This document shows positions 35,908 through 59,662 of a stretch of 64,000 bases of DNA, piece by piece. Location of the stretch: assembly GCF_006345805.1 (NCBI RefSeq), contig NW_021832833.1, forward strand, positions 1 to 64,000, given 5' to 3'. Made by a program: the position numbers and the translations under genes. The DNA comes from Octopus sinensis (lineage: Eukaryota). Each line of letters starts with the position of its first letter. Position 1 is the stretch's first letter. The notes under the pieces are model-generated. The model was given only the letters and a program-made list of their open reading frames with translations. It was not told the origin of the DNA and did no database searches.

Positions 35908-36091
35908 CAGTGTGAACACATTTTCCGTTCTGAAGAATGAAATTTTCCTTACAAACACAGGCATATCTTCCTCTTTCAATTCCGCAGTGGCTGTTTTCAC
36001 CACAAGGAGTGATATCTTCTGTTACGACTTCGTTACCAGGTTTACATATTTTCTTTGTTTTACAATCTGCTGATATAATTTCCTCATTAAC
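35908..36091 (-). CDS. Exon: TILa/EGF-like (phase 0-1)
   Basis: cag|[51 protein letters not shown]|gtgagt. Confidence 0.8.
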
Positions 36092-57000: not shown

Positions 57001-59662
57001 TGAATAGATAGATAGATAGATAGATAGATAGATAGATAGATAGATAGATAGATAGATAGATAGATAGAGATAGATAGATAGATAGATAGATAGATAGATA
57101 GATAGATAGATAGATAGATAGATAGATAGATAGATAGATAGATAGAAAGATAGATAGATAGATAGATAGATAGATAGATAGATAGATAGATAGATAGAGA
57201 TAGACACCGCGAGTGTCAGGTTGCTCTCAAGCATTTCTGCCGTCCAGGACCAAATTTGTGCGACTTCTTTAGAACAAAGGCGTTTTATAGAGGATTAGTG
57301 GAGGGGAGGTGCGACGAAGTTCTCGGGCAGAATCTGGGCATCGACGAGAGACACCTGACCCGCCTGTCACGACAACTTTCGGGTCTGGACCTATGGACAA
57401 TAACCTAAGATCCCTGGCCTGCTAGTGCTATCGAGAAGCATTACCTATTCAGGATAAGCTCTACAGGCACAGTTCGAGACACACTGGGCCTACTTGCCCG
57501 AGATGCGGCCGGAGCGACGAAACCGTTCTGCACGCCTTCGTGCAGTGTATATCCATGTCGGACCTGTGGGCTTATGCCGAGCGGCTGCTGTCATGTGTGG
57601 GACATGTCCGCCTGTCGGCCGAGTCTATTGTCTGGTTTGTACCGCTCCCTTCCCTCAACTAGGAAGACAAGGCAGTTTTCATCGTACTGGTGGCTATGGT
57701 GAAAGAATGTGTGTGGTGGACTCGAGCGAAAGGACAAGAGACAAACACTTATCTCTCTGGCCAATCGCTCATCAACATTTTCAAGTACCACTTCAAAAGG
57801 AATGTGAGAATGTGGAGGCAGGTTTTGTCGCGTGAAAGTTTCAAAAAGTTGGGTGAATGTAGCAAAGATGGTGCGCGCGAGTGACGAAACCACTTTGAGT
57901 ATGATCCTTTAAATCATAGAGAGAGAGAGAGAGAGAGAGAGAGAGAGAGAGAGGAGAGAGAGAGAGAGAGAGAGTACATTGTACTCTTGCTTTTATTTCC
58001 CTCCCTGTCTGAAGTTACCGTGGTCTTTACTGTAAGCTTTTCTTTCCAATGATGAACCTAATATTGTTTGTTACTTTGAAAAAAACGATAAAAAGTTTTA
58101 TTCTTTCTGTGAAACACGATCCCTTTTGATCCCTTTTTTTCCCGATCCATATTGATGGAAATTTAATATTTGTTTCCTTTTTTTTTCTTTTTCCTTTTCC
58201 ATCTCCGAAAAGAAAAGCTCTACATTTGTATCGTCCCCTCCGTGTCCACCCCTGTGTGGCAATAATAAAAGTTATCTATCTATCTATCTATCTATCTATC
58301 TATCTATCTATCTATCTATCTATCTATCTATCTATCTATCTATCTATCTATCTATCTCTATCTATCTATCTATCTCTATCTATCTATCTATCTATCTATC
58401 TATCTATCTATCTATCTGTCTGTCTGTCTGTCTGTCTGTCTCTCCGTTTGTGTGTTTCCCTTTGTACTTTTCGATGCTATAGCAAATTATTAGGATTTTC
58501 TCAATTGCGACGGTTAATCTTCAGTTTTTCTTCCCTACACCCTTCAAATGATGATTTGGGGAAATTTTTGGAAGAATAGTTTTGAAAATTTATTAATCTT
58601 GTGAAAACTAAGCAGGGTACATTCATACACCTTGCTTTTCATTAAAGCAAATTCCTTTCTATGAATGTATAACATTCCAAGCTCCTTTAATATATTGCTA
58701 AAAAGACATTTAGGATTATTTTTAGTGTTATACTTACACGAACGACGGTATCGTCCAATATAACCACGTCGGCATTTACAGGTGAATCTACGTCCTTTCC
58801 TGATACTTATGCCGCCGTTCTTACAAGGTTTCTTATAGCATGGATTCACTTGTATATAAAAGAATTAAAATTAGAATTTCACAATCTTGTGTATAATTAC
58901 AATGAAATAATGGAGAAATTCAATTTTACAAATTTCCTGTCTAGTGCTTTTAATTACTTTCTTTAAATAAAAAATATGAGCTTCGGGTTTCAAAACAATT
59001 TGTAAATTTTCAAAATCTTTTTCATAAGCAAAAGCGTCTCTCTTTGTTTTTAAGAGCGTACTGCAAACAGAAAATTGGCCAAAAAAAAATCTGTCCTGAG
59101 GCTGGGAGCCGAGATTCATAAATTTTCAAACATTTTCTTCCAATAAAAATTTCCCCAAATCATCATTTGAAAGGGTGTAAGAATGAAAAACTGAAGATTA
59201 ACCATCGCAATTAAGAAAATCCAACCTGTTTCGGTGTACTATGCGGAAAGTCCGCCAAGTCACCCAATTGCGATAATTACACGGCAACTACGGGAGATTC
59301 AGTTAATGCGAGTATGTGTATATATACGTGTATATTAGAGAGAGGGGCGACAGAGGGATGGGGATTCATTACGTGGAATAACAGGCGAAGTTTCTCCCAA
59401 TATATTTTCATTAAACAAGCCATTCAACCATGCACATTTCTTAATATGTATTCATGAGGAACCTACCTTGGCTCTTTAAATATACTTGTAAAACAAAATC
59501 TATGATAAATCTATGCCTATAAATTATGGCTATTTCTTATGTTATACTTACATATATTACAGTATCTTCCAGAGTAACCAGGTCTGCATATACAGGTGAA
59601 TCTATGTCCTTTCTTGATACATGTGCCGCCATTCTTACAAGGTCTCCAATGGCATGGATTGA
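35908..59662 (-). CDS. Multi-exon gene (partial): EGFx9-VWA-VWD-C8-TIL-TILa/EGF extracellular matrix or adhesive-type protein
   Basis: 15 exons with AG/GT sites join in phase into 2769 nt (923 codons) without a stop. The start codon, signal peptide and last exon were not identified. Confidence 0.8.
36537..36727 (-). CDS. Exon: TIL domain (phase 1-0)
   Basis: cag|[55 protein letters not shown]..|gtaaaa. Confidence 0.85.
37112..37459. mobile_element. Tc1/mariner-type MITE
   Basis: About 50-bp imperfect TIRs cgaggtctgatcactaagtat../..tactcactgatcagacatcg; TA at the left flank. Confidence 0.65.
37666..37934 (-). CDS. Exon: C8 domain (phase 2-1)
   Basis: cag|[54 protein letters not shown]|gtaaga. 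Confidence 0.87.
39239..40522 (-). mobile_element. Full-length mariner transposon (1284 bp) with a disrupted transposase, intronic
   Basis: 37-bp TIRs (2 mismatches) flanked by TA; WIPKLL, TQDETWV, QDNAPVH and [13 protein letters not shown] motifs; N- and C-termini frameshifted. Confidence 0.93.
40591..40898 (-). CDS. Exon: VWD domain, second half (phase 0-2)
   Basis: cag|[49 protein letters not shown]..|gtaatg. Confidence 0.87.
41937..42074 (-). pseudogene. Partial duplicate of the VWA exon 3' end with its donor site
   Basis: About 97% identical to 44313-44450; intron 41826-41936 matches 43940-44050; no acceptor at the upstream edge. Confidence 0.75.
42329..42576 (-). CDS. Exon: VWD domain, first half (phase 1-0)
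   Basis: cag|[54 protein letters not shown]|gtacgt. Confidence 0.87.
42775..42906 (-). mobile_element. Very short Dong (subfamily 2) 3'-end copy
   Basis: Matches 3861-3995 and sits against a short (TTA)n. Confidence 0.75.
42907..43052 (-). pseudogene. Truncated duplicate VWD exon with a premature stop
   Basis: tttctttctccag|..[31 protein letters not shown]..; cut off by the Dong fragment. Confidence 0.78.
44053..44284 (-). mobile_element. SINE family A, full length, with TSD ttatataaatacttat
   Basis: TSD at 44037-44052 and 44285-44300; the SINE is absent from the paralogous intron at 41826-41936. Confidence 0.85.
44313..44879 (-). CDS. Exon: VWA domain with intact MIDAS (phase 1-1, 567 nt)
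   Basis: cag|[43 protein letters not shown]|gtaagt. Confidence 0.9.
46154..46264 (-). CDS. EGF exon 9 (phase 1-1, 111 nt)
   Basis: tag|[36 protein letters not shown]|gtaagt. Confidence 0.82.
47981..48298. mobile_element. MITE with about 85-bp TIRs and a 9-bp TSD (Mutator- or Merlin-like)
   Basis: TIRs begin ggtact..gagaac / end gttctc..agtacc; TSD aacaatgaa at 47972-47980 and 48299-48307. Confidence 0.8.
48560..48673 (-). CDS. EGF exon 8, divergent (114 nt, Cys2 lost)
   Basis: cag|[37 protein letters not shown]|gtaagt; open frame, sites intact. Confidence 0.6.
49786..49896 (-). CDS. EGF exon 7, type A
   Basis: tag|[36 protein letters not shown]|gtaagt. Confidence 0.8.
50924..51650 (-). 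mobile_element. Tx1/L1-like 3' fragment (deleted derivative of 53625-55170)
   Basis: Same 3'UTR and ORF2 end as 53625-54362, same flanks. Confidence 0.78.
51791..51901 (-). CDS. EGF exon 6, type B
   Basis: aag|[36 protein letters not shown]|gtaagt. Confidence 0.8.
52589..52699 (-). CDS. EGF exon 5, type A
   Basis: tag|[36 protein letters not shown]|gtaagt. Confidence 0.8.
53625..55170 (-). mobile_element. Tx1/L1-like ORF2 3' fragment
   Basis: [35 protein letters not shown] and AKECVWW motifs; 3'UTR abuts (AGAT)n. Confidence 0.82.
55342..55452 (-). CDS. EGF exon 4, type B
   Basis: aag|[36 protein letters not shown]|gtaagt. Confidence 0.8.
56149..56259 (-). CDS. EGF exon 3, type A (extra Cys)
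   Basis: tag|[36 protein letters not shown]|gtaagt. Confidence 0.8.
57205..58272 (+). mobile_element. Tx1/L1-like 3' fragment, inverted relative to its sister copies
   Basis: Plus-strand match to the reverse complement of 53625-54715. Confidence 0.8.
58738..58848 (-). CDS. EGF exon 2, type B (Cys3 and Cys6 lost)
   Basis: aag|[36 protein letters not shown]|gtaagt. Confidence 0.68.
59552..59662 (-). CDS. EGF exon 1, type A
   Basis: tag|[36 protein letters not shown]|gtaagt. Confidence 0.8.

Follow-up and report, generated by a model that had tools for sequence, protein, structure and literature searches.

The window analysed here is a stretch of 64,000 nucleotides from Octopus sinensis (positions 1 to 64,000 of contig NW_021832833.1, assembly GCF_006345805.1), the minus strand of which carries the exons of a gene joining nine strongly basic EGF domains to a VWA domain and a VWD-C8-TIL-E unit (hereafter D assembly). 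The region is probably the 5'-proximal part of an octopod FCGBP/zonadhesin-like gene, with the window holding its 5' part only. Positions 35908 to 59662 had been put forward in a preliminary description as encoding a candidate adhesive or cement protein. The stop-to-stop reading frames comprise nine EGF-like segments (59.7–46.1 kb), a VWA segment (~44.9–44.3 kb), two VWD pieces, C8, TIL and a further cysteine-rich frame at 36.1–35.9 kb. With splice borders assigned, 16 exons with canonical AG/GT borders (most donors reading GTAAGT) have phases that fit together and give a single open frame without a stop, and the other two frames of the joined exons contain 37 and 101 stops. Their order is a tentative WSC-like half exon, nine EGF exons, VWA, VWD1b, VWD2, C8, TIL and E. 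These exons, and two further segments lying between them, are as follows:

61243–61366, minus strand: tentative WSC-like C-terminal half exon; AG/GT borders, open frame, phase-1 end, in frame with EGF1
59552–59662, minus strand: EGF1 (type A); net charge +7; O-fucose and EOGT consensus
58738–58848, minus strand: EGF2 (type B); third and sixth cysteines (C3, C6) lost, leaving four; net +13; may be decaying or a variant
56149–56259, minus strand: EGF3 (type A); seven cysteines; net +9
55342–55452, minus strand: EGF4 (type B, intact); 12 lysines and arginines, three tyrosines; net +12
52589–52699, minus strand: EGF5 (type A); net +9
51791–51901, minus strand: EGF6 (type B, intact); net +12
49786–49896, minus strand: EGF7 (type A); net +9; orthologue of the first EGF in the O. 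bimaculoides RefSeq model
48560–48673, minus strand: EGF8 (variant); C2 lost, extra cysteine beside C6 (GICC); net +9
46154–46264, minus strand: EGF9 (type A-like); net +5; holds the sole acidic residue of the array; spliced to VWA
44313–44885, minus strand: VWA exon; complete metal-ion-dependent adhesion site (MIDAS); phase 1-1; Pfam E=2.4e-43
42907–43052, minus strand: pseudo-exon VWD1a; truncated remnant from the 5' part of the ancestral VWD exon that followed VWA (RPCRC..GDPHY); interrupted by an in-frame TGA
42329–42576, minus strand: VWD exon 1b, of the repeat-unit type; GDPH changed to GDLH and a conserved tyrosine to cysteine
41921–42074, minus strand: intronic copy of the VWA-exon 3' end (44297–44450) including the donor; 98% identity, no acceptor
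40591–40898, minus strand: VWD exon 2, which holds the CGDC motif
37666–37934, minus strand: C8 exon, identified with Pfam
36537–36727, minus strand: TIL exon, identified with Pfam
35908–36091, minus strand: E module of the D assembly; phase-1 GT donor; alignable with the E modules in the repeats of FCGBP

All EGF exons are 111 nucleotides long except EGF8 (114 nucleotides) and all are of phase 1-1, as is the VWA exon, and the phases of the remaining exons fit one another (VWD1b 1-0, VWD2 0-2, C8 2-1, TIL 1-0, last exon 0-1). Pfam searches recovered EGF in nine stretches (E=5.6e-56), VWA (2.4e-43), VWD (3.6e-23), C8 (1.6e-12) and TIL (9.8e-8), in agreement with the nine EGF repeats and the VWD-C8-TIL module behind the VWA that had been noted before. 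Both edges of the span first marked out are exact exon borders, position 59662 being the 5' border of EGF1 and position 35908 the 3' border of the E module, and the gene runs past them on both sides, with the WSC-like exon upstream and an open phase-1 donor on the last exon. From this donor the gene may continue into further exons, or, if the donor is left unspliced, may end two codons on (..HTGE*).

With regard to the D assembly, the VWD, C8 and TIL exons together with the last exon (query residues 6–388) align end to end with each of six human FCGBP repeats (structure 8rde, E=9e-233 overall and 1e-27 to 1e-46 per repeat), followed by MUC5AC, VWF and MUC2 as the next best matches. The last exon had originally been read as EGF-like, but this alignment shows it to be the E module belonging to a canonical D assembly, and all four parts of an FCGBP-type unit (VWD, C8, TIL and E) are thus present. 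The same E-module exon is the first exon of the neighbouring gene models P0006 and P0284. The GDPH autocleavage motif is absent from the exon in use, VWD1b, which reads GDLH, and is retained in pseudo-exon 1a and in the units of O. sinensis, O. vulgaris and O. bimaculoides. The window contains one D assembly, compared with at least two in O. bimaculoides and at least nine in O. vulgaris; no further family exons were found in the 35 kb downstream within the window, a region rich in long interspersed (LINE-type) elements.

That the EGF arm, the VWA and the VWD-C8-TIL module belong to one chain, as previously proposed, is supported by independent gene models. The O. bimaculoides protein XP_052822701.1 (P0283, annotated as "cartilage matrix protein-like, partial"), which sits in the cluster of the closest VWA match P0015, is an EGF-EGF-EGF-VWA-VWD chain and aligns without gaps to residues 265–702 of our model (EGF7 to VWD2) at 84% identity, and so represents a separately derived model with the same EGF-to-VWA and VWA-to-VWD junctions. 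Similarly, the O. sinensis paralogue P0018 ("matrilin-2", 52% identical) consists of a signal peptide or signal peptide-like start, two basic EGFs and a VWA; in its locus there is one EGF per exon as here, including a stop-containing pseudo-EGF exon, and its gene model runs into a mariner-type element similar to one in the window (see below).

The outstanding feature of the EGF array is its charge. Its 334 residues include 33 lysines and 53 arginines, a single aspartate and no glutamate (net charge +85, isoelectric point 10.2), together with 20 tyrosines (6.0%) and 53 cysteines (15.9%), lysine plus arginine making up 25.7%. The earlier counts of one acidic residue over nine repeats and of 12 basic residues and three tyrosines in an intact type B repeat were therefore reproduced, the latter in both EGF4 and EGF6 (four lysines and eight arginines per 37 residues). 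Likewise, the reported absence of a calcium-binding consensus stands: neither the PROSITE pattern for calcium-binding EGF (PS01187) nor that for Asx hydroxylation (PS00010) had any match in the array, and Pfam EGF_CA reached 19.2 bits, under its cut-off of 27. As a reference we used the 111 EGF proteins closest to the query, whose 765 EGF domains have a mean net charge of +0.1 (standard deviation 2.3), with 0.9% of domains reaching +7. The octopus mean of +8.7 per EGF lies above all but one of these 111 proteins, the sole comparable one being a "Notch-like" protein of the soft coral Xenia sp. (P0014, +7.7 per EGF, 54% identical), which indicates that similar cationic EGF rods exist outside molluscs. 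The Xenia protein has 7–9 EGFs rich in lysine and tyrosine, flanked by another repeated domain rich in cysteine and tryptophan. The consensus patterns for O-fucose and for EOGT-dependent O-GlcNAc, as established for the glycosylation of Notch EGFs, occur in three A-type repeats and in six repeats, respectively.

In the O. bimaculoides locus (L003), no fewer than ten basic EGF exons, of type A as well as type B and with net charges of +10 to +12 each, lie 5' of the same VWA; the RefSeq model has the last three of these, and assembly gaps break the array. The cationicity of the arm is thus extreme and conserved between the species. Exon identity between species is 94% for A-type, approximately 90% for B-type and 84% for EGF8, which places the origin of the three exon types before the species split, while B copies within a species are 93–98% identical, which points to amplification or homogenisation within each lineage. 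EGF8 was also considered as a decayed exon, which we reject: the identical cysteine pattern is found in O. bimaculoides (L003 12436–12546) and within its RefSeq model, and this conservation implies an alternative disulfide arrangement. In a B-type EGF of each species C6 is replaced by arginine (58738–58848 on the minus strand of the window, GRYRRS; L003 8594–8704, GRYRRA), which may be either a variant common to both or a change that arose more than once.

The VWA exon has all residues of a metal site (DDSGS, GGWTHT and VVITDG, supplying the DxSxS motif, threonine and aspartate), and is by these predicted metal-coordinating residues a MIDAS-type domain, consistent with the intact MIDAS described initially. 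Its closest relatives in the PDB are collagen VI alpha3, the mussel byssal protein PTMP1 (second best) and integrin I domains, and its nearest relatives in sequence searches are all octopod, with 88–89% amino acid identity to the O. bimaculoides orthologue (88% for P0015, the closest match). A search with the VWA exon alone retrieved mainly multi-VWA collagen VI-like proteins carrying little information on architecture, and also brought up the O. vulgaris protein P0151 discussed below. At the other end of the array, the exon at 61243–61366 can be aligned, in register, to the latter half of the WSC domain that Pfam confirms in P0012, a bivalve WSC-EGF-VWD protein (z=4.5, 2/500 shuffles), and is tentatively called WSC-like from this alignment. 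The call stays tentative because the WSC profile did not match this exon in Pfam even at E<=10, and because a database search with the half domain plus EGF1 returned no orthologue; the first half of a WSC domain is absent from the window.

Recent tandem duplication of an A-B exon pair has enlarged the array: the pair lies within a unit of approximately 3.4 kb, present in 4.5 copies, with intron identity between units of up to 95–96%. An 8-nucleotide-period microsatellite, which translates as YLSI repeats, lies inside the EGF duplication units (50616–50988, 53297–53600 and 56858–57036), and its presence inside each unit indicates that it was duplicated together with the exons. Compared with the older EGF9, the exons are better kept (87% identity) than the introns (65–80%). 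VWD exon 1 is also present twice, exon 1a resembling the post-VWA exon of O. bimaculoides (RPCRC...) and exon 1b being of the repeat-unit type, an arrangement that points to the first D assembly having recombined with a later unit. The 154-nucleotide copy of the VWA-exon 3' end (98% identity), which sits in the intron after VWD1b and has no acceptor, is probably not spliced. Membership in a large octopod D-assembly family, the young age of the tandemly duplicated EGF exons, some of them with cysteine defects, and the pseudo-exons are all additions to the preliminary description.

Across octopods, PAN, EGF, VWA and D-assembly exons occur in varied orders, and the locus is the front part of a gene in an FCGBP/zonadhesin-like family with a modular build, rapid evolution and varying copy number. 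Within 2.5 kb after its E-module exon, O. bimaculoides has a second VWA, an EGF and another D assembly; an apparent loss of TIL and of part of VWD2 in this species was discarded, as those positions are N-gaps. In O. vulgaris there are at least nine D-assembly units with an acidic EGF before each, then a diverged unit and PAN domains, and the model of this array is a 2245-residue "IgGFc-binding mua-3-like" protein; the D unit of the window has approximately 91% DNA identity to each O. vulgaris unit, and those are 93–97% identical among themselves, a difference that marks the window's unit as a distinct one or as coming from a related octopus. In O. sinensis itself the D-assembly unit is tandemly repeated at locus L001 (CM016861.1). 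This locus was rejected as a strict orthologue, since it is a repeat-unit region with 90–95% nucleotide identity and no VWA or EGF within 19 kb upstream. Each of its units has an exon disrupted by an indel (C8 in unit 1, VWD2 in unit 2; 21974 and 28142–28206), reflecting either assembly error or real decay, and the RefSeq model P0002 reads through the frameshifted C8. Other paralogues consist of the same exon-sized modules in shuffled order at 44–52% identity: P0003, a zonadhesin with the order PAN-PAN-EGF-VWD-C8-TIL-E-VWA; P0018, which shares the EGF-to-VWA junction and the basic EGFs of the window gene; and P0151 (O. vulgaris CAI9720130.1), with five near-identical basic VWAs followed by VWD (lysine plus arginine 21%, net charge +163). 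They differ from the window gene in the number, order and type of arms, and none is annotated with a nine-EGF cationic array. P0151 and other basic members imply that this design, a polycationic tandem arm attached to a D assembly, recurs; P0151 shares a chromosome with the O. vulgaris D-assembly array. The automatic NCBI names given to pieces of the gene are "cartilage matrix protein-like", "zonadhesin-like" and "IgGFc-binding protein-like".

We compared the proportions of nonsynonymous (pN) and synonymous (pS) differences with those of the relatives, leaving out of the total ratio the VWD1a and VWD2 3' rows, which were mis-registered. Over EGF7–9, VWA, VWD, C8 and E, comparison with O. bimaculoides gave pS=0.142 and pN=0.081 (ratio 0.57), with nonsynonymous changes below the neutral expectation (binomial p=7e-4) and ratios per exon of 0.4–0.9. 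Against the O. sinensis units, exons are 94–99% and introns 90–95% identical with pN/pS of 0.37–0.66, and in VWD1b pN exceeds pS. The gene is thus fast-evolving but under net purifying selection.

Among known systems, the closest counterpart of the D assembly is FCGBP, a vertebrate mucus protein of tandem VWD-C8-TIL-E repeats, to each of which the whole window unit aligns; the orthologous O. vulgaris locus, which repeats the unit at least nine times, and the orthologous units, which keep GDPH, strengthen the likeness. Unlike FCGBP, the window has a single D assembly with GDLH and, in front of it, a VWA and a polycationic EGF array, and octopod units are interleaved with EGFs and end in PAN/Apple domains. 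Zonadhesin also has the D assembly, but no MAM domain or transmembrane segment is present in the window, whose edges cut the gene short. The combination of a VWA with EGFs that do not bind calcium recalls matrilin (cartilage matrix protein), and NCBI names the orthologue and the paralogue accordingly, but membership was rejected on domain order: EGF9-VWA-VWD-C8-TIL-E here, an EGFn-VWA-VWD arrangement as opposed to VWA-EGFn-VWA, with no coiled coil among the exons and a D assembly following. The array likewise falls outside the calcium-binding EGF class of fibrillin and Notch, as both the calcium-binding motif and the Asx-hydroxylation consensus are absent. The protein is best filed among the FCGBP/zonadhesin-like D-assembly proteins, a broad secreted class that is already known.

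The resemblance to the mussel plaque protein mfp-2, on which the adhesive proposal had drawn, holds for composition and does not extend to specific kinship. Like mfp-2 and PVFP-5, the octopus array consists of tandem small EGFs that are basic and rich in tyrosine and cysteine, PVFP-5 (7qab) is a significant PDB match to it (E=9e-10), and similar basic EGF arrays have been labelled "adhesive plaque matrix protein 2-like" by annotation pipelines. However, DLL1 (2e-60) and Notch1 outrank PVFP-5, the best EGF match in the database is the soft-coral Notch-like protein, and unlike mfp-2 the octopus arm is fused to a VWA and a D assembly. The flatworm protein Mlig-ap1 and sea-star Sfp1 are large secreted cysteine-rich chains with VWD-C8-TIL and EGF domains that act as cohesive proteins in temporary adhesion. 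Mlig-ap1 also bears arms of extreme positive charge, whose action is electrostatic and blocked by heparin (PMC6410801). Its charge resides in unstructured lysine/arginine repeats and its EGFs bind calcium, whereas the octopus charge is placed in EGF folds without calcium sites; there are also no lectin domains in the window. The likeness observed is one of shared domain types. The cuttlefish egg-case proteins SepECP1 and SepECP2 are cysteine-rich, cationic (+70 and +42) and "cartilage matrix protein"-like, and form a bacteriostatic mesh (PMC4500399). They resemble the octopus protein in being cephalopod, secreted, cysteine-rich and cationic, a likeness drawn from their description and not from full sequences, but are of approximately 70 kDa and said to be without repeats; the published SepECP peptides were absent from all proteins fetched for comparison.

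We therefore favour, with a probability of roughly 0.6, a secreted and disulfide-stabilised cross-linker of a gel or matrix, built on an octopod FCGBP/zonadhesin-type scaffold and carrying a cationic arm for binding polyanions. The protein would be secreted into an extracellular gel, be it mucus, an egg coat or stalk, or a glue, where its D assembly or assemblies would link chains into disulfide-stabilised multimers or cross-links, in the manner of FCGBP, mucins and VWF. The VWA would hold a protein partner through its metal site, as do VWAs of the collagen VI and PTMP1 types, and the EGF array, as a rigid disulfide-knotted rod with about +9 per 37 residues, would bind polyanions electrostatically, candidates being sulfated or sialylated glycans, bacterial surfaces and conditioned substrata. 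In this way the molecule would compact the gel or fix it in place. The domain architecture exists as described and is conserved, and its charge is exceptional. Proteins with VWD and VWA domains are enriched in O. vulgaris skin mucus (PMC10138644), and in the oviducal gland of O. maya the level of a "ZAN" transcript goes up at fertilisation (PMC8976471); the family entries in the O. vulgaris mucus proteome are other genes, and its "zonadhesin-like" entry A0A7E6ERF9, considered as a candidate for this gene, is not P0002, P0006 or P0003.

Several observations weigh against this proposal. No expression or proteomic support was found for the locus, and no peptides of the locus occur in the supplementary tables to the study on skin mucus from O. 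vulgaris. Of the 73 tryptic peptides that the arm would yield, 50 have fewer than 7 residues. The N-terminus and signal peptide lie beyond the window, so that the case for secretion is made from the domain types and from the paralogue P0018. EGF2 and EGF3 have cysteine defects (loss of C3 and C6, and seven cysteines, respectively), and exon 1b has GDLH and an additional cysteine where relatives have tyrosine. Among the young EGF copies, exon identity (87–98%) is not above that of the flanking introns and pN is close to pS, and the pseudo-exons mark the locus as unstable. The EGF and VWA exons are also absent from the O. sinensis and O. vulgaris annotations, and the O. bimaculoides model, with the last three EGFs only, implies that EGF1–6 may not all be included in the mRNA.

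An adhesive or egg-cement role is plausible by analogy, and the first alternative to the proposed gel cross-linker is a dedicated adhesive, acting as egg-stalk cement from the oviducal gland or as sucker or skin glue, in which the tyrosine-bearing EGF arm would bind surfaces as in mfp-2, possibly through 3,4-dihydroxyphenylalanine, and the D assembly would give cohesion as in Sfp1. The composition fits (lysine plus arginine 25.7%, tyrosine 6%, cysteine 16%), the heparin-blocked Mlig-ap1 (PMC6410801) and the cationic egg-case mesh of SepECP1/2 (PMC4500399) provide precedents, PTMP1 and PVFP-5 appear among the structural relatives, PTMP1 as the second-best VWA match, and the "ZAN" rise in the O. 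maya oviducal gland (PMC8976471) places a family label in a suitable tissue. The reasoning is nevertheless by analogy throughout, as no link from expression or proteome to an adhesive tissue was found and the O. maya transcript is known by label only; moreover, the tyrosine content is modest, the best EGF relatives are Delta and Notch with a PVFP-5 match no better than generic EGF similarity, and the D assembly is most like a mucus protein. We consider an exclusively adhesive function rather unlikely.

A barrier or immune protein, whose EGF arm would agglutinate or kill microbes in a mucus or egg-coat mesh, possibly after defensin-like, cationic and disulfide-knotted units are freed by proteolysis, overlaps with the favoured gel cross-linker and does not exclude it. 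The net charge of +85 with almost no acidic residues (one aspartate), the agglomeration of Vibrio and bacteriostatic action described for the SepECPs (PMC4500399), the FCGBP-like mucus context and a combination of fast evolution and copy-number change that is typical of genes at host-microbe interfaces are all in keeping with it. On the other hand, there is no dibasic-processing architecture beyond the general richness in lysine and arginine, and EGF folds are not known as antimicrobial units, so that on balance this role, which is also proposed by analogy, appears unlikely.

Much of what was held above against the cross-linker would also follow if the locus were partly or wholly non-functional, with EGF1–6 or the whole rearranged region being recent duplicates that drift to pseudogenes and give no stable mRNA. 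The similar exon and intron identities and pN close to pS in the young copies, the loss of two cysteines in EGF2 and the odd count in EGF3, the stop-containing VWD1a, the stray VWA fragment, the changes to GDLH and from tyrosine to cysteine at conserved VWD positions, the missing annotation in O. sinensis and O. vulgaris, the insertions of transposable elements and the 35 kb downstream without family exons all point that way. What makes non-functionality quite unlikely is that 16/16 exons have an open frame and canonical splice sites, that exon types and charge are conserved between species, that net purifying selection is significant, and that the odd EGF8 is conserved and the O. bimaculoides "defects" are assembly gaps. 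Finally, species-specific adhesion of sperm to the egg coat in the sense of zonadhesin would account for the rapid evolution and the divergence in repeat number (pN/pS of 0.4–0.9 per exon, with D-assembly numbers differing widely between species) and agrees with the zonadhesin-like NCBI names of family members and the ZAN increase in the O. maya oviducal gland at fertilisation, but it is very unlikely given that the window contains no MAM domain, mucin spacer or transmembrane segment, that the name derives from D-assembly similarity only and that the top structural relative is FCGBP.

If the secreted cross-linker is made as modelled, it would be a rare case of extreme positive charge (about +9 per 37 residues) residing in a rigid, disulfide-knotted EGF rod and not in a disordered lysine/arginine tail, with the rod sharing one chain with a MIDAS VWA and an FCGBP-type polymerising module. 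Such a design could serve wet adhesion, gel condensation or the trapping of microbes, in an animal group for which little is known of the molecules in glues, egg cements and mucus. It belongs to a family that evolves through rapid amplification of exons and units and that current octopus annotations split and truncate at this locus. Most EGF exons are symmetric, of the same length and of phase 1-1, and could be added, lost or skipped without a break in frame. One may speculate, with low probability, that the arm works as an "electrostatic glue" tunable by copy number and splicing, in which a structured polycationic rod, a metal-dependent VWA and a polymerising D assembly would form a folded-domain counterpart of Mlig-ap1 and the SepECPs, used in egg-stalk or sucker adhesion and in trapping bacteria, and evolving fast between species.

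The window further contains several types of repetitive DNA. A remnant of a mariner-type element (Transposase_1, E=1.7e-22) with an open reading frame of 277 residues lies in the intron between VWD2 and C8 (39221–40054, minus strand), and long open reading frames typical of retrotransposons without long terminal repeats (non-LTR) are found at 453–3164 (minus strand), 3960–5495 (minus strand) and 27784–29933 (plus strand), one of them, of 903 residues, with a YMDD-type reverse transcriptase motif. Scans of the window with Rfam and for tRNA genes gave no matches. Many copies of a repeat of approximately 240 nucleotides, 75–91% identical to each other and likewise without tRNA or Rfam match, occur in the window (60977–61217, 44050–44300, 6086–6304, 7483–7856, 9402–9693 and 23691–24456) and in all four octopus loci compared, and this repeat is probably an element resembling short interspersed elements (SINE-like).

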